NCBI GenBank assembly: GCA_002269645.1
Contig: NIVC01000206.1
Coordinates: forward strand, 62,001 to 126,000
DNA length: 64,000 bases
From: Macrostomum lignano
Taxonomy: Eukaryota
Direction of reading: 5' to 3'
Shown here: positions 1-63,990 of the stretch, in pieces
Numbering within the stretch: position 1 is the stretch's first letter
Layout: every line of letters begins with the position of its first letter
The notes under the pieces: model-generated
What the model was told of the DNA's origin: nothing
Database searches by the model: none
Seen by the model: the letters and a program-made list of their open reading frames with translations, nothing else
Position numbers and translations under genes: made by a program

Positions 1-389
<389 letters not shown>

Positions 390-1063: not shown

Positions 1064-2101
1064 ATGGAGAAGCGACAGCACCTCCTTGTTCTGCTGCTGC
1101 TGCCACTGCTGCCTGTCGTGCTGCTTGCTGTCGCCACTGACCCAGTTGTGGCTAAGAATTACAAGTTCCGCCAAGACCCTGTCTGCCCTCCAGCTGTTGG
1201 GGTTCCAGCCTCAATGACTGTTGAGGGTGTCCAGTCACCCAGGACCTGCTCGATTGAGTGTTCGGTGAGGACCGATTGCGCCGTGTACAGCTTTGTCAGC
1301 GCGTCCAACCAGTGCCAGATGGGCAGCACCGCCGACCTGCTTAACACCTGGTCAACCAGCCCTGGGACGCCCTGCGTGAGCCAGCTGAATCCTCGCCTGC
1401 CGGGCATTCTGACATTCCGATCCAAACTGCTGGCTTTCTTGGACTTTCGCGTTGGTCAGGACAATCTTGTTGGTAGCGCCCAGTTCAAAGTGCAGTCTAC
1501 TTCGTCGGGAGTCACTTTCGTTCCCGGGCAGGGAGCCATGTTCGCCCCCCTGAGCTCGGGAGTGTCCAACTACATCGAGCTGCAGAACAGCGGCGGCCTT
1601 CACACTATCGCTAGTTTGCTTGGACGCGGCAACAACTTCTCCGTGTACGCTCGGATTAACAGGCTGGTTGATGTCGAAGAGCAATGGATCTATCTGCTGT
1701 CTGACTGCGAATCTTACAACCAGCCTAGAGGCGCAATGCTGAACTTCCAAAATAGGACTGGCATTTTTCACAGCATGACCTCCCCTGATGAAATTAAATT
1801 TAGAATAAGCGCCGATATGATGCCGCAACCCCCTGTTGGAGTCACTAATGTTGAAACTTCGATGGGTGTCGTGTTCAGCGACAATGACTTCACCGGAACC
1901 TTCTATAATGGAACTCTGTATAATGTGCAACCATTTAGTCAGAGCGGCTTACCGAACTTCACAGGCCTCCCGGAGTGCATCCGCCTTGGCTACTCTCCGG
2001 AACCCAATAAAGGACTAGTCGGCCGGTTCACCTGCTTCGTCATTGCTAATGCCACCCTGACAGCCTCGGAATTCGCCGAACTGGATGCACTGTGCTGGTA
2101 A
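1064..2101 (+). CDS. Secreted protein: signal peptide + PAN/Apple domain + LamG/concanavalin A-like domain (345 aa)
   Basis: First ATG is at 1064 (MEKRQHLLVLLLLPLLPVVLLAVA, signal-like). The PAN-type Cys pattern is C..SPRTCSIECSVRTDCAVYSFVSASNQCQMG. The C-terminal beta-rich region (GVTFVPGQGAMF..SNYIEL..NFSVYARIN) resembles LamG_3. A candidate 5'UTR intron lies at 958-1054 (GTGAGT...CTAATTGCAG). Confidence 0.75.
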   Translation: MEKRQHLLVLLLLPLLPVVLLAVATDPVVAKNYKFRQDPVCPPAVGVPASMTVEGVQSPRTCSIECSVRTDCAVYSFVSASNQCQMGSTADLLNTWSTSPGTPCVSQLNPRLPGILTFRSKLLAFLDFRVGQDNLVGSAQFKVQSTSSGVTFVPGQGAMFAPLSSGVSNYIELQNSGGLHTIASLLGRGNNFSVYARINRLVDVEEQWIYLLSDCESYNQPRGAMLNFQNRTGIFHSMTSPDEIKFRISADMMPQPPVGVTNVETSMGVVFSDNDFTGTFYNGTLYNVQPFSQSGLPNFTGLPECIRLGYSPEPNKGLVGRFTCFVIANATLTASEFAELDALCW

Positions 2102-3684: not shown

Positions 3685-5054
3685 GGGAGTACGACGTTTG
3701 CTTGCGGGAAGTTTGCTTGCCGAACTTTGCTTGCGGGAACTTTGCTTGCCGAACTTTGCTTGCTGAGCTTTGCTGGCGGAATTCTGCTTGCTGAGCTTTG
3801 CTTGCCGAATTTTGCTTGCAGGAACTTTGCTTGCCGAATTTTGCTTGCAGGAACTTTGCTTGCCGAATTTTGCTTACCGAACTTTGCTTGCCGAACTTTG
3901 CTTGCAGGAACTTTGCTTGCCGAATTTTGCTTGCCGAATTTTGCTTGCAGGAACTTTGCTTGCCGAATTTTGCTTGCAGGAACTTTGCTTGCCGAATTTT
4001 GCTTACCGAACTTTGCTTGTCGAACTTTGATTGCCGAACTTTGCTTGCGGAATTTTGATGTCTGCTTCCTAGAAATTCGCAATCACAGTTGCAAGGTTTT
4101 AACTTGCCGAATTATTTTCTTGTTTGCTTGCTTGTTTGATTGCTTGTGAAGTTAGTCAGTCAATTATTACTTACTACAGATGCTTTGCAAGTGGATTCTT
4201 ATCAGCGTCGACGTAAACTGACTTGACACTAAGCTTTCAAACTGGGCTTATAGAGTTTCATTCTAAGAATTTAGTGATTAGAGATTTAGTATAGGTAGAT
4301 TGGGATCGGTAACAGTATAAATCTTTGTAGTTCCTGATTTCAGCACGATTGAGCAGGTATGATAATTGTAGCGATGCTAATGTATAATAATGCATATACT
4401 AATGATAATTAGTATATAAAAATGTAAACGCACTTGGACTGGCGGATTTGCACGAGTACTAGTGTCGTGTACTTGTCACCGAGGAACAAAAGTTAAAACA
4501 CTCGTAGAACCGAAAGTTCCGTGGAGTTTCGAAAGTTTCTGCGTTAGGGCTGAAATCATAACGAATCTTCCACGAATCTTAGAAAATGAAAATTAGAAAT
4601 ACAAGAGCTCAAAAATAGGTTCTTTAAGGTTTCGCAAGAAAACTTTGCCGGCAAACCTCGGCAAGCAAAGTTCGGCAAGCAAAGTTCCCGCAAGCAAAGT
4701 TCGGCAAGCAAAATTCGGCAAGCAAAATTCGGCAAGCAAAATTCGGCAAGCAAAATTCGGCAAGCAAAGTTCGGCAAGCAAAGTTCGGCAAGCAAAGTTC
4801 CGGCAAGCAAAGTTCGGCAAGCAAAGTTCGGCAAGCAAAGTTCCTGCAAGCAAAGTTCGGCAAGCAAAGTTCGGCAAGCTAAGTTCGGCAAGCAAAGTTT
4901 CTGCAAGCAAAGTTCCTGCAAGCAAAGTTCCTGCAAGCAAACTTCGGCAAGCTTATGTGCAGCAAGCAAATTTCCTGCAAGCAAATGTCGGCAAGCAAAA
5001 TTCGGCAAGCAAAGTTCGGCAAGCAAAAGTCTCGCAAGCAAATTTCATAGACCC
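3685..5054. mobile_element. Foldback/Mutator-like non-autonomous element with modular inverted arms
   Basis: An array of ~14-15 bp units (aactttgcttgccg) at 3700-4050 is the reverse complement of the array at 4640-5040. The outer ends align (GGGAGTACGACGTTTGCTTGCG vs rc GGGTCTATGAAATTTGCTTGCG). No TSD was found. Confidence 0.5.
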
Positions 5055-10477: not shown

Positions 10478-12792
<2,315 letters not shown>

Positions 12793-16189: not shown

Positions 16190-18650
16190 ACATATCCCCA
16201 ATATGCTTCCCTAATTTATCCCCAATATGCTACCCTGATTTATCCCCAATATGCTTCCCTAATTTATCCCCAATATTCTACCATGATTTATCCCCAATAT
16301 GCTTCCCTAATTTATCCCCAATATGCTACCCTGATTTATCCCCAATATGCTACCCTGATTTATCCCCAATATGCTTCCCTAATTTATCCCCAATATGCTA
16401 CCCTGATTTATCCCCAATATTCTACTCTGATTTATCCCCAATATGCTTCCCTAATTTATCCCCAATATGCTACCCTGATTTATCCCCAATATGCTACCCT
16501 GAATTATCCCCAATATGCTTCCCTAATTTATCCCCAATATGCTACCCTGATTTATCCCCAATATGCTTCCCTGATTTATCCCCAATATGCTTCCCTAATT
16601 TATCCCCAATATGCTACCCTGATTTATCCCCAATATTCTACTCTGATTTATCCCCAATATGCTTCCCTAATTTATCCCCAATATGCTACCCTGATTTATC
16701 CCCAATATGCTACCCTGATTTATCCCCAATATGCTTCCCTAATTTATCCCCAATATGCTACCCTGATTTATCCCCAATATGCTACCCTGATTTATCCCCA
16801 ATATGCTTCCCTAATTTATCCCCAATATGCTACCCTGATTTATCCCCAATATGCTACCCTGATTTATCCCCAATATGCTTCCCTGATTTATCCCCAATAT
16901 GCTTCCCTAATTTATCCCCAATATGCTACCCTAATTTATCCCCTATATGCTTTTTTTTAATTTATCCCCAATATGCTTCCCTAATTTATCCCCAATATGC
17001 TACCCTGATTTATCCCCAATATGCTACCCTGATTTATCCCCAATATGCTACCCTGATTTATCCCCAATATGCTTCCCTAATTTATCCCCAATATGCTACC
17101 CTGATTTATCCCCAATATGCTACCCTGATTTATCCCCAATATGCTTCCCTAATTTATCCCCAATATGCTACCCTGATTTATCCCCAATATGCTACCCTGA
17201 TTTATCCCCAATATGCTTCCCTGATTTATCCCCAATATGCTTCCCTAATTTATCCCCAATATGCTACCCTAATTTATCCCCTATATGCTTTTTTTAATTT
17301 ATCCCCAATATGCTTCCCTAATTTATCCCTAATATGCTTCCCTAATCTATCCCCAATATGCTACCCTAATTTATCCCCAAAATGCTTTCCTAATTTATCC
17401 CCAATATGCTTCACTAATTTATCCCCAATATGCTTCCCTAATTTATCCCCAATATGCTTCCCTAATTTATCCCTAATATGCTTCCCTAATCTATCCCCAA
17501 TATGCTACCCTAATTTATCCCCAAAATGCTTTCCTAATTTATCCCCAATATGCTTCACTAATTTATCACTTAGATGCTTCCCTAATTTATTCTTTATATG
17601 CTTCACTATCACTAATTTATCCCCAATATGCTTCACTAACTTTTATCCCCAATATGCATAACTAATTTATCCCCAAAATGCTTTCCTAATTTATCCCCAA
17701 TATGCTTCACTAATTTATCACTTAGATGCTTCCCTAATTTATTCTTTATATGCTTCACTATCACTAATTTATCCCCAATATGCTTCACTAACTTTTATCC
17801 CCAATATGCATAACTAATTTATCCCCAATATGCTTCCCTAATTTATTCCTTATATGCTTCACTAATAATTATCCCCCATATGCTTCCCTAATTTATCCCC
17901 AATGTGCTCACTTTCCTAATTTATCCCCAATATGTTACCCTAATTTATCCCTGATATGCTTCCCTAATTTATCCCCAATATGCTTACTTTCCTAATTTAT
18001 CCCCAATATGCTTCCCTAATTCATTTCTTATATCATGCTTCACTAATAATTATCCCCCATATGCTTCCCTAATTCATTTCTTATATCATGCTTCACTAAT
18101 AATTATCCCCCATATGCTTCCCTAATTTATCCCCCATATGCTTCCCTAATTTATCCCCAATATGCTTACTTTCCTAATTTATCCCCAATATGCTTCCCTA
18201 ATTTATCCCCAATATTCTTACTTTCTTAATTTATCCCCAAATATGCTTCCCTAATTTATCCCCAATATGCTTCCCTAATTTATCCCTAATATGCTTCACT
18301 AACTTTTATCCCCAATATGCATAACTAATTTATCCCCAATATGCTTCACTAATTTATCCCCAAATATGCTTCCCTAATTTATCCCTAATATGCTTCACTA
18401 ATTTATCCCGAATATGCTTCCCTAATTTATCCCCAATATGCTTCCCTAGTTTATCCCCAATATGCTTCACTAACTTTTATCCCCAATATGCATAACTAAT
18501 TTATCCCCAATATGCATAACTAATTTATCCCCAATATGCATAACTAATTTATCCCCAATATGCTTCCCTAATTTATTCTTTATATGCTTCACTAATTTAT
18601 CCCCAACATGCTTTACTAGTTTATCCCCAAATACGCTTCACTAATTTATG
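16190..18650. repeat. 24-bp minisatellite (~100 units)
   Basis: Unit atttatccccaatatgct(t/a)ccct(a/g). It is homogeneous at the 5' end and increasingly degenerate after ~17300. Confidence 0.97.
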
Positions 18651-33683: not shown

Positions 33684-34826
33684 ATGTACGACAGCAGCAA
33701 TAGTACAGCCGAAGAAGAAGAACTGCCTTGGTTTGAAATTCCCAGCTGGCGCTGGGCCTTCACTAACATCGTCATTTGGCTGATGCCAACTTTAATGGTT
33801 TTCGGAATAGTCGTCAACGTTCTCTGCTTCATCACCATCCTACTCAACTCGAAGACTTTCCCTAAAATATCGAGGCGCACGATGTTGATCATTACCAGCT
33901 TCGACGCGCTTTCGCTGGCAATCGGCGGCTTCAACTGCTACCAGATCTACTTGATGCGCACAATGAACTACAAACTGTCCCCGTTTCTGAAGCTCATGAA
34001 CGAAAACGCGGCCGCGTGTTACATTGTCAACTATGTCCACAAGTACATACTGAATGGAACGCCGTACTTTCACGTTGGACTTACAGTTGAACGCGTCCTA
34101 GCCGTGGTGATGCCGCTGAAAGTGAAGACAATCATGACTGGACGCAACCACTGCATCATGCTAATCATTCTGTTTCTGTTAGGCAGCATTGACCCGGCCC
34201 TGTGGTCTGCCGAGCAAGAGTACTTTGACAACCGCTGCGATAGCAGGACTGACGAAGCATTGTTGGCCGTCTTGGACCCACTGCAGTACAATATCGAGTT
34301 CTACGTGTCAAAGGTGGCACTGTTCTTTGTTCTTCTATCCGGATGCATCATCGTGGCCGTTGCGCTTCGGCTTCAGGCCAGCAAGTTGAGCCGCCTGACC
34401 AGCGGCTCGGCCAACCTGAAGCGCAACAAAATGGTCGGCGCCTGCACCGCGATGATCGGCATGAACCTCGTGTTCTTCCTGACGCACGCGCCCAGGGCGG
34501 CCTTCTCTGTGTACGAAGGCTACAGCGCCAGGTACTTGTCGCCGAGCAAACAACTAACCGAGAGCCAGTTAGACTTGGGCTATCAAGTTATGGAGGGCTT
34601 CATGTTCTTGAACAGCATTTTCGATCCGTTTGCTTACTTCATTGGACGAAGCTTTCGTACGGCCTTCTGCCAGACGATTGGGGGCGCCATCTGCCTGGCA
34701 ACCGCTGGCCTGTGCGGCAGGCGCCGAAAGGCGTCAGCGAAGGAGTCGTCGGGCATCAACCTGGCCACCTCGGTGACGACGGCGTACAATATTAGGACCA
34801 CCGCTCTGGATGAGGCTCGAAGGTAA
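33684..34826 (+). CDS. Rhodopsin-family (class A) GPCR, peptide-receptor-like, 380 aa, uninterrupted CDS
   Basis: Seven hydrophobic segments with class A motifs: TM1 GIVVN, TM2 D, TM3 TVERVLAVVMP, TM6 FFLTHAP, TM7 NSIFDPFAY. N-terminal sequons are present. Confidence 0.92.
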   Translation: MYDSSNSTAEEEELPWFEIPSWRWAFTNIVIWLMPTLMVFGIVVNVLCFITILLNSKTFPKISRRTMLIITSFDALSLAIGGFNCYQIYLMRTMNYKLSPFLKLMNENAAACYIVNYVHKYILNGTPYFHVGLTVERVLAVVMPLKVKTIMTGRNHCIMLIILFLLGSIDPALWSAEQEYFDNRCDSRTDEALLAVLDPLQYNIEFYVSKVALFFVLLSGCIIVAVALRLQASKLSRLTSGSANLKRNKMVGACTAMIGMNLVFFLTHAPRAAFSVYEGYSARYLSPSKQLTESQLDLGYQVMEGFMFLNSIFDPFAYFIGRSFRTAFCQTIGGAICLATAGLCGRRRKASAKESSGINLATSVTTAYNIRTTALDEARR

Positions 34827-44699: not shown

Positions 44700-47040
44700 G
44701 CCTGGTCAGGGGAGCCACCCTAGCGGCGGGCATTATCACTGAAGACTTGATCGCTCGTGCGGTCAGAACCTTCAAGCCCTTCAAATCTCCTGGACCTGAT
44801 GGTATCTACCCTGTTCTTCTTCGTGAAGCAGCCAATATACCCTCGTTCTTGAGACTCGCAATCTCATGCGGGCCTCTATCCAGCTGGGATACGTTCCCAA
44901 GTGCTGGACCAAAGCTCGGGTAGTCTTCATTCCCAAACCCGGGAAGGGTGAACTACCAGAGCGTCAAGGCCTTTAGGCCAATTAGCTTAACGTCAGCAAG
45001 CTCTGGTCGCTGCTTTCATGCGAGCTGACAGCAATGCCCCTCAAGCAATAATCAGCACGCCTTCCGTACCAGGTCGACTGACAGCGCCCTGCATGCGATT
45101 GTCGAGAAGATTGAACGGGTAGTACTTGGTGACGGTAACGCCCTGGCTCTTTTTCTCGACATTATTGGCGCCTTCGACAACGTTATCTTTGAAGCGTTTC
45201 AGAGGGCCCTTCAAAACCGCAAAGCTCACGCTACCCTCATACGGTGGATCATGTACATGATCTCCAACCGTACGGTCACTGCCCAACTTCTTGGGCAAAC
45301 TGCCTCCACCAGAGTCTGTAAGGGTGGACCCCAAGGCGGAGTCCTCACCCCGACGCTCTGGAACCTGGTCATGGACGCTCTCCTGGGCGACTCACGACCT
45401 GATCCCGTCTTCAAAGTCGGGCATGCTGACGACGTCACTGCCATTGTGGCAGGACCGTCTCCCAGCACGCTCAGGGATCTGATGCAGAGCTTTATCCGCA
45501 AAGCCGAATCCTGGGCCAATGACAACGGTCTGGAACTCTCTGAGCCCAAAACTGTTGCCATTATGTTCACCAGCAGAATACGCTGGAACATACGACCTCT
45601 GCAGTTATACGGCAGAGATATTGCCTTCGCGCACCAGACCAGATGTCTTAGGGTCATACTTGACCACCGGCTCAACTGGTCCTTCCACGTGAAAGCAAAA
45701 GCCAAGCGTGCCTCAGCCATCCTGGCCCAGCTCCGACGAGCACTTGGCACTTCTTGGGGTCTATCCCCAAAGCGGCTTTGGTGGATCTACACTTCCGTAG
45801 TTAGACCCGCCATTACGTACGCCTCGGTTGTCTGGGTTAGCGCTACCCAGGTCAAAAGCCACGCAGATTTGCTCAACACGATCCAGGGCAGAGCGTGTAG
45901 GCTTATCTGCAACGCCACCAGGTCCACGCCCTTTGCCGGCATGGGGGCCTTCCTTAATCTACCGCCTCTCGACCTCTTCGTCAGGGGTGAGGCGGCTAGA
46001 ACGATGCGGCGCTTACTTGATGCCGGTGTCAAATTCATTTACATGAGGGCAACTGCTAAGCGGAACCTTGTCCCGCATAGCGACCTGTGCCTCAACATTC
46101 TCAACGAGTGTCAGGCCAATTGCGTCTTCACCGATGACATTGCCTCAACAACGCTCAACCTGAAACAACGCTACTCCGTAGCTATAGACTCGCGCGATAC
46201 CATCAATGACCACTGGAAACCTGGTGAGTTTCATTGCTACACCGACGGTTCTAAGCAGTCAGCCAACACCGGTTTTGGTGTTGGAATCTTCCTGAACGAG
46301 AGGGTCATCGCAACCCACGCTCAGTACACTGGGGTCAACTTCAGTGTCTTCCAAAATGGAGTTCTCGCCATCAGCTCCTGCACGGCAGAGCTTCTCGCCA
46401 CTGGCGTAACCGGTAAGAACATCATTTTCCATTTGGACAGCCAAGCTGCCTTGCACGCCATCAGTGGCTGTAGTACCAATTCTGCTACAGTCCTCAACTG
46501 TATCAAACTCCTCAACATGTTGGGTTCCACCAACAAAATCACCCTTAAGTGGGTTCCGGGGCATGTGGGGATCCGAGGAAATGAGTTGGCTGACGCCCTT
46601 GCAAAAGTTGGTGCCTCCGGCTCCTCTCTCGGTCCAGAACCTCTTGTCCCGATTCCTGGCTGTGTCATTGACTCGCGCATCAAAGCGTGGATCAGGACCC
46701 AGCACCGCTCGACCTGGGCGAACTGCACTACATGCAGGCAATCCAAAGGTGCTGTCCCTCAGCCCTCTCACCTGCTCCGGAAGCTCCTCTTGCGCCTCTC
46801 GCGCAGAGACATCCGGGCTGCCACCATGACCCTCCTAGGTCACAGCTGCTTCTCTAGGCACCAGTACCTGCAGGGCAACACCACCAACGCCATCTGCAGT
46901 TTTTGTAACTCAGGTGACGAAACCGCTGAGCATTTCCGCCAGACTCACTTACCTCGGGCCACACACATCTATTACTGAAGTGTGCAAACCCGAAAACTTT
47001 CATCAGCTCATGCGCTACCTCCGGGCCACCCGCAGGGCCG
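44700..47040 (+). mobile_element. 5'-truncated, frameshifted non-LTR retrotransposon with RT + RNase H (R1/LOA/I-group-like)
   Basis: Motifs FKPFKSPGPDGIYP, RPISLTS, FLDIIGAFDNV, GPQGGVLTPTLWNL, GHADD, then RNase H YTDGS, LDSQAAL, WVPGHVGIRGNELADALAK and a CxxC..H knuckle. Several frameshifts. Confidence 0.92.
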
Positions 47041-47515
47041 AACTCTCCTTTCCAGAGAGCACTATAGCTGATGTTGAAATATGGCTTAATGCATCAGCTA
47101 TTGTCAGTGACAATCCATGTGGTACTCAATACTTGAAAGCATTGGCTATATGGGACATGGAGGCAGCAGTAACCAAAGCCCAGATTGAGAAATTAAGCCA
47201 AAAAAACTTTTAGATATCATTCTGATGCTACTACGACATTTCGTTCGTAAAAGCAATTATCATCATCAACGCCCTAAAAATGTCTAAAAAACGCTCTAAA
47301 ATTCATGAATGATTCAGAAAATATTGTATCCTGTCTATAATTATATGGGCTCCGTAGAAAAATACACAAAATACTACTCACACAAGAACACTCCAGCTAT
47401 ATTGTTCCAGTCAATAAAAAGAAAAAACTAACACAGAGACTCTCATTTCATTTTTCATTGTGAGAGAAACCAGAGTTCATAGAGCATAGCACCGATTGGT
47501 TGAGTAGCAAACGGT

Positions 47516-48514
47516 TCAATAACTTCCGCCCTTGTTCCAACGCTGTCCGCTCCTGTTCCAGCGCTGTCCACCCTTGTTCCAGCGCTGTCCGCCCTTGTTC
47601 CAGCGCTGTCCGCCCTTGTTCCACTGTCCGCCCTTGTTCCAGCGCTGTCCGCCCTTGTTCCAACGTTGTCCGCCCTTGTTCCAGCGCTGTCCGCCCTTGT
47701 TCCAACGTTGTCCGCCCTTGATCCAACGTTGTCCGCCCTTGTTCCAGCGCTGTCCGCCCTTGTTCCACTGTCCGCCCTTGTTCCAGCGCTGTCCGCCCTT
47801 GTTCCAACGTTGTCCGCCCTTGTTCCAACGCTGTCCGCCTTTATTCCAACGTTGTCCGCCTTTGTTCCAGCGCTGTCCGCCTTTGTTCCAGCGCTGTCCG
47901 CCCTTGTTCCAGCGCTGTCCACCTTTGTTCCAGCGCTGTCCGCCCTTGTTCCAACGCTGTCCGCCCTTGTTCCAGCGCTGTCCACCTTTGTTCCAGCGCT
48001 GTCCGCCCTTGTTCCAGCGCTGTCCACCTTTGTTCCAGCGCTGTCCGCCCTTGTTCCAACGCTGTCCGCCCTTGTTCCAGCGCTGTCCACCTTTGTTCCA
48101 GCGCTGTCCGCCCTTGTTCCAGCGCTGTCCACCTTTGTTCCAGCGCTGTCCGCCCTTGTTCCAACGCTGTCCGCCCTTGTTCCAACGCTGTCCGCCCTTG
48201 TTCCAGCGCTGTCCACCTTTGTTCCAGCGCTGTCCGCCCTTGTTTCAACGCTGTCCGCCCTTGTTCCAACGCTGTCCGCCCTTGTTCCAGCGCTGTCCGC
48301 CTTTATTCCAGCGTTGTCCGCCTTTGTTCCAGCGCTGTCCGCCTTTATTCCAACGTTGTCCGCCTTTGTTCCAGCGCTGTCCGCCCTTGTGCTTTCTGCT
48401 CCAGTCGATGGCTCTGACGCCGGAGCTATCAGGCAGATTGGCGGCCGCGATGGCGCACAAAAGCGCCGCAGTGGCCGCCAGAAGAAGAAGATGCCTCGAA
48501 GACTTTGTCGGCAT
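47516..48514 (-). CDS. Secreted cationic repeat protein: signal peptide + 41 x KGGQRWN (332 codons; internal TGG>TGA at 48245-48247)
   Basis: MPTKSSRHLLLLAATAALLCAIAAA signal, short pro-region, then an in-frame array ending WNKGGSY*. Recurrent unit variation falls at third codon positions and the indels are 3 nt. Confidence 0.8.
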
Positions 48515-48932
48515 TCTGTTTGCTTGAAGCAGATACCTTGGTCAGTTAGCAAAAATGTTTACCTGTCTGAGTGCAATATACATCGGTTATTTATGCTGAA
48601 TTTGAAGAAGCACACGATAGGTTGATTACACAAACGCACCTGCAACAGAGCGCTGATGACAGGTGAGTATTCAGATGTGTTGAGACAGTCTCAAATTGAC
48701 AGGAATTCAACAATTTGGCCAAATTAATAGTAAGTCTGGCTTGACTTTGCCAGGTGCAAACCGCTAATTAGCCAAATTTATTAATTTATTCCAGTCAAGA
48801 AGCAGCTCGTATTAATTAGCAGTGCGCGTCAAAAATATTTGATCTGCTACGGAAGGAAAGCGGGTTTGCGAGGAAATTCTTAGAAACCTCACAATTTTTC
48901 CGGCGATAAAAACTAAAAAACTCATTTTTTAA

Positions 48933-49672
48933 TGTGAGGGAGGTCAGTGTGAGGGAGGTCAGTGTGAGGGAGGTCAGTGTGAGGGAGGTCAGTGTGAGGG
49001 AGGTCAGTGTGAGGGAGGTCAGTGTAAGGGAGGTCAGTGTGAGGGGGTCAGTGTAAGGGAGGTCAGTGTGAGGGAGGTCAATGTGAGGGGGTCAGTGTGA
49101 GGGAGGTCAATGTGAGGGGGTCAGTGTGAGGGAGGTCAGTATAAGGGAGGTCAGTGTAAGGGAGGTCAGTCTGAGGGAGGTCAGTGTGAGGGAGGTCAGT
49201 GTGAGGGAGGTCAGTGTGAGGGAGGTCAGTGTGAGGGAGGTCAGTGTGAGGGAGGTCAGTGCAAGGGAGGTCAGTGTAAGGGAGGTCAGTCTGAGGGAGG
49301 TCAGTGTGAGGGAGGTCAGTGTGAGGGAGGTCAGTGTGAGGGAGGTCAGTGTGAGGGAGGTCAATGTGAGGGGTCAGTGTGAGGGAGGTCAGTGTAAGGG
49401 AGGTCAGCGTGATGGAGGTCAGTGTGAGGGAGGTCAATGTGAGGGGGTCAGTGTAAGGGAGGTCAGCGTGATGGAGGTCAGTGTGAGGGAGGTCAATGTG
49501 AGGGGGTCAGTGTGAGGGAGGTCAGTGTAAGGGAGGTCATTATGAGGGAGGTCAGTGTGAGGTAGGTCAATGTGAGGGAGGTCAGCGTGATGGAGGTCAG
49601 TGTGAGGGTCAGAGTGAGGGAGGTCAGAGTGAGGAAGGTCAGAGTGAGGGAGGTGAGGGAGGTCAGTGAGGG
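48933..49672. repeat. G-rich ~15-bp minisatellite (gtgtgagggaggtca)
   Basis: ~49 units of 14-15 bp, most containing AGGTCA or GGGTCA. Confidence 0.95.
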
Positions 49673-63231: not shown

Positions 63232-63990
63232 TCACACGTGAATCCGTTTGTACTTCATCCACTGCAGCATCTCTTCGTTGTTGGCAGAAAAGCCAGAGTC
63301 ACTCAGCGGCAGGCTGGCGTCAAAGTAGGGCAGCAGGACGCACTGCCTCCTCACCGGGTGCCAGTAGTATCCGATGCAGTCCTCAAACTCGAAAACAAGA
63401 CAGGCCTGGGAGCAGTGGAAGTGAGTTTTAGCCCTTGGTTCCTTGATCCAGCAGCCCGGGTCGGGCTGGTTGTACGCGACGATTTCCGTGCGAACAAATT
63501 TACCAGTGGTCGCTTTGTTGGAGATTCGGTTGGCCACAGCGGCATCCTCGTAACAGAAAACGTTGTTTAGATCATTGCAAGTCTCGTCCCTCAGCTTTCT
63601 TTCTGAGTCACTTTTTATTGTCACACAGTCTTGGTTGTTGTCCAGATTATTTGGTTCCGTACTTAGGAAATATGATCCACTAGCATCCGTGACCTGGCCA
63701 TCCTTGATCCAAACCCAGCCGTCTTTCTGAGTGCCTCTCTCGTTCAGCGCATCGACCAGTCCGACCCACCATCTGTCACCGGAAAAGCTCACAGCCGCCA
63801 TGGCGTCGTGCACAGACTTGCTGATCATTTCGTGGCCGTGCTCGTGACAAATCCTAATAGCATCGCAGAATGTCACCTGTTTATCGTAATTCTTGACACA
63901 CCAAGACTTTCCAGAATTGTTGACCGCAATCAACCCGCCAGAACAAGTCGCGGCAACAGAGGCAGGCATTAACAGAAGGGCAGCTACCAT
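63232..63990 (-). CDS. Secreted C-type lectin domain + PAN/Apple domain protein (may extend 5' beyond the window)
   Basis: Hydrophobic N-terminus; CTLD motifs WWVGL, WVW, EPN, QDCV, RDETC; C-terminal CSQAC...CIGYYW....RQCVL PAN pattern. There is no upstream in-frame stop before the window edge. Confidence 0.82.
   Translation of the reverse strand: MVAALLLMPASVAATCSGGLIAVNNSGKSWCVKNYDKQVTFCDAIRICHEHGHEMISKSVHDAMAAVSFSGDRWWVGLVDALNERGTQKDGWVWIKDGQVTDASGSYFLSTEPNNLDNNQDCVTIKSDSERKLRDETCNDLNNVFCYEDAAVANRISNKATTGKFVRTEIVAYNQPDPGCWIKEPRAKTHFHCSQACLVFEFEDCIGYYWHPVRRQCVLLPYFDASLPLSDSGFSANNEEMLQWMKYKRIHV

Follow-up and report, generated by a model that had tools for sequence, protein, structure and literature searches.

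Mussel foot protein-1, with its decapeptide repeats, and the sandcastle-worm proteins Pc-1 and Pc-2, with their Gly/Lys/Tyr repeats, are secreted proteins built from short repeated units, and the aromatic residue carried by each unit in these systems drives cation-π cohesion and coacervation. Short units also recur in multi-copy peptide precursors, including those of the FMRFamide type, the cnidarian RFamides, and the insect antimicrobials apidaecin and Baramicin. Head-to-tail arrays of one peptide together with its cleavage site are known in the FMRFamide-type and cnidarian precursors, and the motif rule for proprotein convertases includes the spacings (R/K)-X2-(R/K) and (R/K)-X6-(R/K). A further class comprises the Trp/Arg-rich cationic antimicrobials, such as indolicidin, tritrpticin, and the RW motifs of the lactoferricin type, as well as the Gly/aromatic NLP and CNC peptides of nematodes. 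Here, we describe a tandem-repeat locus in a stretch of 64,000 nucleotides from the flatworm Macrostomum lignano (GenBank assembly GCA_002269645.1, contig NIVC01000206.1, positions 62,001 to 126,000 of the forward strand; referred to below as the window), in which the minus strand of window positions 47516-48514 can be read as a gene for a secreted protein of 41 heptad units, KGGQRWN.

In M. lignano itself, two-thirds of the adhesive protein Mlig-ap1 consists of secreted Gly/Arg/Lys-rich (GRK-rich) repeats, whose role is still called enigmatic; they flank a core of vWD, TIL, EGF, C-type lectin, TSP-1, and LDL domains (PMC8621496). Secreted proteins that are gland-specific and lack homologues are frequent in the genus: of the prostate-limited transcripts, 31 of 76 had no BLAST match, and signal peptides were present in 38 of 65 (PMC5977470). 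Invertebrate glands, those of Macrostomum included, commonly produce orphan secreted tandem-repeat proteins (PMC5977470, PMC8621496).

The KGGQRWN product resembles Mlig-ap1 in its origin from the same genus-level lineage, its predicted signal peptide, its long, highly positive, low-complexity tandem repeats, and the dominance of Gly, Arg, and Lys (~55% in the KGGQRWN product), both proteins being predicted or assumed to be disordered. However, Mlig-ap1 is very large and has a folded core, whereas the KGGQRWN product is small and consists of a leader, a spacer, and repeats only, with no Pfam domain; its unit contains an invariant Trp, Asn, and Gln, and no sequence homology between the two was detected. 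With mussel fp-1 and Pc-1/Pc-2 it would share a signal peptide, dozens of units of 7 to 10 residues, a high pI, richness in Gly and Lys, and an aromatic residue in every unit, although this residue is Trp and not Tyr or DOPA, the product has one Tyr and no Cys, and no homology was found. The likeness to the multi-copy precursors lies in the signal peptide, the many head-to-tail copies of a short unit, the basic residues at fixed spacing, and units that are identical as protein and silently different as DNA, whereas a dibasic or RXRR site, a Gly amidation donor, acidic spacers, and any family similarity are absent. The predicted KGGQRWN product also recalls the Trp/Arg-rich antimicrobials in being cationic, Gly-rich, secreted, and unstructured in solution, with an R-W pair in each unit; those, however, are short single peptides or are present in few copies at defined sites, whereas this array has 41 heptads with Asn, Gln, and low hydrophobicity. 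The KGGQRWN product shows neither folded domains nor Tyr/DOPA or Cys chemistry, carries no clearly recognised processing sites, and has no homology to any of the compared families, so that it appears to belong to none of them. The kind of gene, that is, a lineage-restricted secreted repeat protein, would be a known one, and the repeat itself would be new.

The first-pass annotation of this DNA had not recognised the repeat from any known family, and the homology searches bore this out. Pfam gave no family or domain in the KGGQRWN product, and a word-indexed search of the conceptual protein against 5.8 billion proteins returned 1067 candidates, none of them at E<=10. An exhaustive HMMER search against 1.84 billion representatives gave 776 matches to the conceptual protein; those inspected were rejected as homologues, being unrelated period-7 repeats (DISGQRV, RGGRRWV, NKGPQPG, KGGYKKN, GRSWHxx, and others) that share the period and a few residues only, and none matched the N terminus. 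Matches in the PDB were engineered consensus TPR proteins only, which we regard as spurious periodic matches. Besides, degenerate DNA patterns (of two units and of 1.1 units) run against JGI metagenomes and prokaryote genomes gave zero or single chance matches and no arrays, Rfam gave no match in the array region, and exact-product look-ups for five open reading frames (ORFs) of the window found nothing on record. A full-text literature search yielded no paper containing the motif, nor was the motif found in the supplements of an M. lignano seminal-fluid screen, and no second copy or paralogue of the array or its flanks was present within the window. The gene may therefore be regarded as an orphan at the resolution of the databases searched, which did not take in the genomes of the source species or its congeners.

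Codon-phased variation and the probable coding strand

Direct translation of the minus strand of 47516-48514 gave MPTKSSRHLLLLAATAALLCAIAAANLPDSSGVRAIDWSRKH, followed by 41 units and then KGGSY and a stop, which lies five codons past the last unit. Tandem Repeats Finder (TRF) placed the minisatellite array at 47525-48390 (period 21, 41.5 copies, 90% matches). Together, translation and TRF reproduced the layout annotated at first pass, namely, an ATG at 48514, a signal-peptide-like start, a spacer, 41 units, and a stop at 47516. If an internal stop (discussed below) is read through, the full frame comprises 333 codons from the ATG to the terminal TGA; 10 codons upstream of this ATG there is a TGA in the same frame, and no earlier ATG follows that stop.

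The unit length was 21 bp in 39 of the 41 units and 18 bp in the other two (units 30 and 37), and KGGQRWN was encoded by 36 of 41 units via nine synonymous DNA types. When the units were written as a string of types (AFDHDCIABCCABABCABABCABADFJEAGAKEAEAGAALM), higher-order repeats became visible inside the array, i.e., a 5-unit ABABC block and a 7-unit duplication of 144 bp. The two short units had been described earlier as deletions of exactly one codon each, and this was confirmed, the loss being that of one CGC codon in both. The type string and the 144-bp repeat family show that the seven-unit duplication copied one into the other, so that the two deletions represent one event. The sole length change in the array is thus -3 bp, a clean codon loss that keeps the frame.

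We compared the 41 units column by column and found that recurrent variants were confined to unit positions 3, 6, 12, 15, and 21 (AAG/AAA, 13 times; GGC/GGT, 7 times; CAG/CAA, 7 times; CGC/CGT, 14 times; and AAC/AAT, 3 times). Each of the five is a third-position change, each is a GC>AT transition, and each is silent in the KGGQRWN frame, in agreement with the earlier reading that all recurrent variants fall on third positions; minor-allele counts by codon phase were 45, 2, and 1 (45 of 48 in one phase). The remaining departures were singletons, and they are the same N>I, KG>RS, and nonsense changes that had been listed before: W to stop in unit 7, N>I in unit 32, and K>R and G>S in unit 41. 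Nonsynonymous changes in this frame accordingly number four, every one of them a singleton. The chance that five random transitions would all be silent is P=0.0003 in the KGGQRWN frame and P=0.008 in any of the six frames. Among the 14 G/C positions of the unit, this frame offers just five silent GC>AT transitions, and the five recurrent variants coincide with that set (1 in 2002 by direct count); none of the nine possible nonsynonymous GC>AT transitions was recurrent.

As controls, unit length and phase were parsed in the window's seven further arrays with periods divisible by three. Their unit lengths break the frame (e.g., 12-14, 22-28, and 25-30 bp), and their variation is spread roughly evenly over the three phases. 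Since the controls are frame-breaking and show no codon phase, the KGGQRWN array stands out, and its pattern is not a general property of the minisatellites of this genome. The first-pass annotation had proposed protein-level selection on the array, and the silent recurrent variants, the control arrays, and the P value of 0.0003 support such a signature. These results speak for an array that codes for protein, or did so in the past, and against a non-coding minisatellite of the usual type.

The array is open in all six frames, and in one of these, the antisense FQRCPPL (plus strand, ORF 47532-48527), the third codon positions coincide with those of KGGQRWN. The recurrent changes had been said to be mostly non-synonymous in the other open frames; this held for four of the five other frames and failed for FQRCPPL, in which all five are silent. 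In that frame, 7 of 9 variant types are silent, including TGG>TGA (read as TTC>TTT) and A>G at unit position 2. Because FQRCPPL shares the third positions, silent variation shows present or past coding of the array and not which strand carries it.

The KGGQRWN frame is favoured on its ATG/leader/stop architecture, its codon usage, the silent sites that vary, and the codon-exact deletion. We compiled a codon-usage table from four window ORFs (1285 codons; G+C content at third positions [GC3], 0.68), with which the KGGQRWN consensus codons scored best of the six frames, the summed ln relative synonymous codon usage (RSCU) being 2.06 versus 0.77 for FQRCPPL (RSCU: TGT, 0.5; TTG, 0.79; CCC, 0.81). 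The GC3 of the 42 leader and spacer codons was 0.69 versus 0.68 in the reference ORFs; the codon usage of these unique N-terminal codons pointed in the right direction and was too weak to count. Six silent transitions are open to KGGQRWN, of which five recur, and the sixth, GGA>GGG, gives the most avoided Gly codon (RSCU 0.24), whereas eight are open to FQRCPPL, of which five recur, and TGT>TGC, which leads toward the preferred codon, was never seen. Furthermore, the deletion that is codon-exact in KGGQRWN straddles two codons in FQRCPPL (QR>H). We consider it quite probable that the locus codes in the KGGQRWN frame at present or did so until very recently.

The predicted product and competing explanations

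The N terminus is signal-peptide-like and would fit a classically secreted protein. The leader opens with the basic stretch MPTKSSRH (K, R, and H) and continues with LLLLAATAALLCAIAAA, a run of 17 uncharged hydrophobic residues; the cleavage site is predicted between AAA and NL, with Ala at -3 and -1, which gives a leader of 25 residues. This leader passes a signal-peptide heuristic met by 2.5-4% of the ATG-started ORFs of the window. The end of the spacer (DWS plus RKH) resembles a degenerate, in-frame partial repeat unit. The properties of the product were computed with the internal stop read as Trp and the 25-residue leader removed: the mature protein would have 307 residues, a mass of ~36 kDa, a pI of ~12, and a net charge of ~+82, and would be composed of 27% Gly and ~14% each of Lys, Arg, Trp, Asn, and Gln. 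AlphaFold2 yielded a pLDDT of 48, a pTM of 0.14, and no secondary structure, and the product is accordingly predicted to be intrinsically disordered.

Our leading reading, to which we assign as a whole statement a probability of about 45%, is that of a single-exon, lineage-restricted gene (48514-47516, minus strand) for a secreted, disordered polycation that is used intact. The locus would be transcribed from the minus strand, and the product would enter the secretory pathway via its 25-residue signal peptide, cut between AAA and NL. The mature protein, a disordered polycation of ~41 KGGQRWN heptads, would then be released intact from a gland or epidermal cell. It might bind polyanionic partners by multivalent electrostatic and Trp-mediated (cation-π and stacking) contacts, candidate partners being mucus or glycans, the substrate, egg or partner surfaces, and microbial envelopes, and would serve as an adhesive, cohesive, coating, or antimicrobial secretion; an uncleaved adhesive, antimicrobial, or reproductive protein had also been suggested at first pass.

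Several points weigh against this reading. An orthologue, transcript, or protein record of the KGGQRWN product was not found in the protein, DNA-pattern, and exact-product searches, and the signal peptide was judged by a home-made heuristic only. Many units are recent copies, as the higher-order repeats show, so that the independent mutations are few (about five silent, about four nonsynonymous, and one deletion), and the five recurrent variants are equally silent in FQRCPPL, which has no stop. In the KGGQRWN frame, by contrast, a TGA in unit 7 interrupts translation, and the assembled copy encodes 89 residues with 6.7 repeats (64 residues with a charge of ~+15 after removal of the leader); it is here that the ORF list splits the gene, as had been pointed out, the ORF 48245-48514 ending at this codon. 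Neither AATAAA nor ATTAAA was found within 800 nt downstream of the minus-strand ORF. With one Tyr and no Cys, the product is without the cross-linking chemistry of classical DOPA or disulfide adhesives.

It is unlikely, in our estimate, that the same gene and frame encode a multi-copy peptide precursor, which is the main alternative and had been put forward in the first-pass annotation. In that case, a subtilisin-like proprotein convertase would cut after the Lys of R-W-N-K, a carboxypeptidase would trim the Lys, and ~40 unamidated GGQRWN peptides would be released, to act as a signal (neuropeptide, pheromone, or seminal allohormone) or as an antimicrobial peptide. Such processing is suggested by the signal peptide, by the short spacer that ends in RKH directly before the first unit, and by basic residues whose fixed spacing in each unit, as read from the sequence, fits both (R/K)-X2-(R/K) and (R/K)-X6-(R/K). 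The amino acid conservation of the units despite their silent divergence (36 of 41 identical via nine DNA types) points the same way, although it can also be explained by unequal crossing-over, visible as higher-order repeats. Moreover, each unit has one K and one R, and no dibasic pair (KR, RR, or KK) occurs in the units; the Gly residues follow Lys, so that none stands before a basic residue and amidation would not occur; and acidic spacers are absent. Cleavage at both K and R would leave only GGQ and WN fragments, and Pfam and protein searches gave no similarity to known neuropeptide families. We likewise hold it improbable that the locus represents a previously unknown family of flatworm bioactive peptides (~40 unamidated GGQRWN, with a role as neuropeptide, pheromone, seminal-fluid allohormone, or host-defence peptide) that arose de novo or diverged beyond recognition within Macrostomum and is evolving by unequal crossing-over under per-unit selection.

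It is also distinctly doubtful that the gene is dead or dying, i.e., that it was coding until recently and that the TGA is the mark of a pseudogene or, in a duplicated genome, of a surplus copy without function, the locus having no present function. In addition to the internal stop and the missing canonical poly(A) signal, this explanation can draw on the location of the nonsynonymous singletons and the deletion, all of which lie downstream of the TGA (units 30, 32, 37, and 41), on the position of the locus between a truncated retroelement and another minisatellite, and on the absence of its exact products from public gene calls. However, 34 of the 40 stop-free units are downstream of the TGA, so the few nonsynonymous events are expected there by chance. 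The recurrent variants of units 8 to 41 are silent only and the deletion is codon-sized, implying that any decay would be very young. The stop itself amounts to one G>A transition in a unit of the CGT type, and since a stop can be reached in one step by 82 routes from the 41 TGG codons, a nonsense allele is not rare a priori. As units 8 to 41 keep the coding signature, the TGA is probably recent, a polymorphism, or an assembly error, and the 89-residue product with its 6.7 repeats could still function. Two ways around the stop were rejected: splicing around the TGA, since the only GT-containing units (AAAGGTGGA) lie downstream of it, and the reading of TGA as Trp, since TGA also closes this ORF at its end and the region belongs to the nuclear genome.

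Coding on the plus strand is very unlikely. The array would then be an internal exon of Cys/Pro-rich FQRCPPL repeats, and only by chance would an ATG and a leader lie on the minus strand, the base rate for such a leader being ~3%. The FQRCPPL frame is open from 47532 to 48527, takes up 7 of the 9 variant types silently, including the change that is nonsense on the other strand, and has units that each end in a pyrimidine tract plus CAG, which looks like a splice acceptor when read from the sequence. However, this ORF has no ATG, and since a TAA stands directly before the array at its edge, translation would have to come from an unknown exon further upstream by way of an acceptor within the array, whereas the only plus-strand ORF upstream is that of the retroelement RT/RNase H. 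Its poorer codon usage, its use of five of eight available silent transitions, and the misaligned deletion argue in the same direction.

Equally improbable is the idea that chance gave a non-coding minisatellite of the usual type, or the 3' tail of the neighbouring retroelement, its open frame, its leader, and its variant pattern. Minisatellites do abound in the window (52 TRF rows), the array is open in all six frames, its units are for the most part recent copies, and a truncated non-LTR element on the plus strand ends ~540-550 bp from it. However, the phase concentration, the frame-keeping lengths, and the restriction of recurrent variants to silent changes each set the array apart from the seven controls (jointly P=0.0003 to 0.008), the leader adds a further factor of ~0.03, and the array flanks are unique within the window. 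The array as a retroelement tail was rejected, because it begins ~550 bp past the RT/RNase H stop, because an AATAAA and a stretch rich in A (plus strand) separate the ORF of the element from the array, and because no such array follows the ORF of a related element recovered from a metagenome.

Features of the locus and its surroundings

The features of the KGGQRWN locus are collected in the table. The TATA-like and initiator-like motifs, as read from the sequence, are spaced ~25 nt apart and, if used, would set a 5' untranslated region of ~54 nt; no ATG occurs between the initiator-like motif and the start codon.

Table. Positions of features at the KGGQRWN locus, in window coordinates
Feature	Position	Strand	Description	Basis
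Possible core promoter	48565-48594	-	TATA-like ATAAATAA at 48587-48594 and initiator-like TCAGAC at 48565-48570	Inferred only
Start codon and signal-peptide-like leader	48440-48514	-	Start codon 48512-48514; leader MPTKSSRHLLLLAATAALLCAIAAA	Translation and heuristic
Spacer	48389-48439	-	NLPDSSGVRAIDWSRKH, 17 residues	Translation
Array of 41 units	47534-48388	-		TRF and unit parsing
Premature stop	48245-48247	-	TGG>TGA in unit 7	End of ORF 48245-48514
Unit 30	47762-47779	-	18 bp; Arg codon CGC lost, KGGQWN	Unit parsing
Unit 32 singleton	47720-47722	-	AAC>ATC (N>I)	Unit parsing
Unit 37	47618-47635	-	18 bp; copy of unit 30 via the 144-bp duplication	Unit parsing
Unit 41	47534-47554	-	AGG AGC GGA CAG CGT TGG AAC (RSGQRWN); two nonsynonymous singletons	Unit parsing
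Terminal partial unit and stop	47516-47533	-	KGGSY and stop TGA (47516-47518)	Translation
Candidate polyadenylation hexamers	47398-47459	-	AATGAA at 47454-47459, AATGAA at 47447-47452, AATATA at 47398-47403; no others	

On one side of the locus lies the retroelement ORF (45251-46978, plus strand), a 5'-truncated non-LTR element with partial RT and RNase H, whose best matches are all M. lignano proteins (73-83% identity over parts of the query). On the other side, ~420 bp upstream of the KGGQRWN start codon, is a 15-mer array at 48933-49654 (TGTGAGGGAGGTCAG, ~49 copies) whose plus strand is rich in G. Its unit lengths are not frame-preserving, which makes it non-coding, and it could affect the promoter region. 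Other repeats of the window include a 24-mer array at 16193-18649 (TATCCCCAATATGCTTCCCTAATT, ~100 copies), which has frame-breaking unit lengths and no codon phase and shows extreme strand asymmetry, with a GC skew of -0.63 over 16-18 kb. Two 14-mer arrays, at 3697-4057 (TTTGCTTGCCGAAC, ~25 copies) and 4658-5046 (the reverse complement, TCGGCAAGCAAAGT, ~27 copies), lie ~600 bp apart, and this inverted minisatellite pair could form a long hairpin or mark a transposon terminal structure. A near-perfect (AGAT)n microsatellite of 96 copies occupies window positions 1-386, and no tRNA genes were found in the window.

Among the other ORFs, 11866-12792 (plus strand), with TPR repeats followed by CAG/polyQ tracts, and 63232-63990 (minus strand), a C-type lectin of 252 residues, were used as codon-usage references. 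The ORF 1064-2098 (plus strand; 345 residues) begins with a strongly signal-peptide-like sequence (MEKRQHLLVLLLLPLLPVVLLAVA...), matches the PAN domain weakly, and is probably a real secreted-protein exon or gene. The ORF 33684-34826 (plus strand) encodes an apparently intronless, rhodopsin-family G protein-coupled receptor (GPCR) of 380 residues, whose single match among 5.8 billion proteins at E<=1e-10 is an M. lignano GPCR with 40% identity, which places it in a receptor family that is fast-evolving or lineage-specific.

Possible meaning for the secreted repertoire of Macrostomum

Genes of this kind are hidden by repeat masking and by ORF tracks, and an argument from silent sites in a tandem repeat always calls for a look at the antisense frame with the same third positions. 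If the KGGQRWN gene is real and expressed, the secretions of Macrostomum glands or epidermis would gain a polycation that has no homologue. The genus serves as a model of temporary bioadhesion, sexual conflict, and regeneration, and the GRK repeats of its adhesive proteins are described as enigmatic to this day (PMC8621496). With Arg, Lys, and Trp spaced regularly, the predicted KGGQRWN product would then provide a natural test case for cohesion driven by cation-π contacts or for membrane activity.

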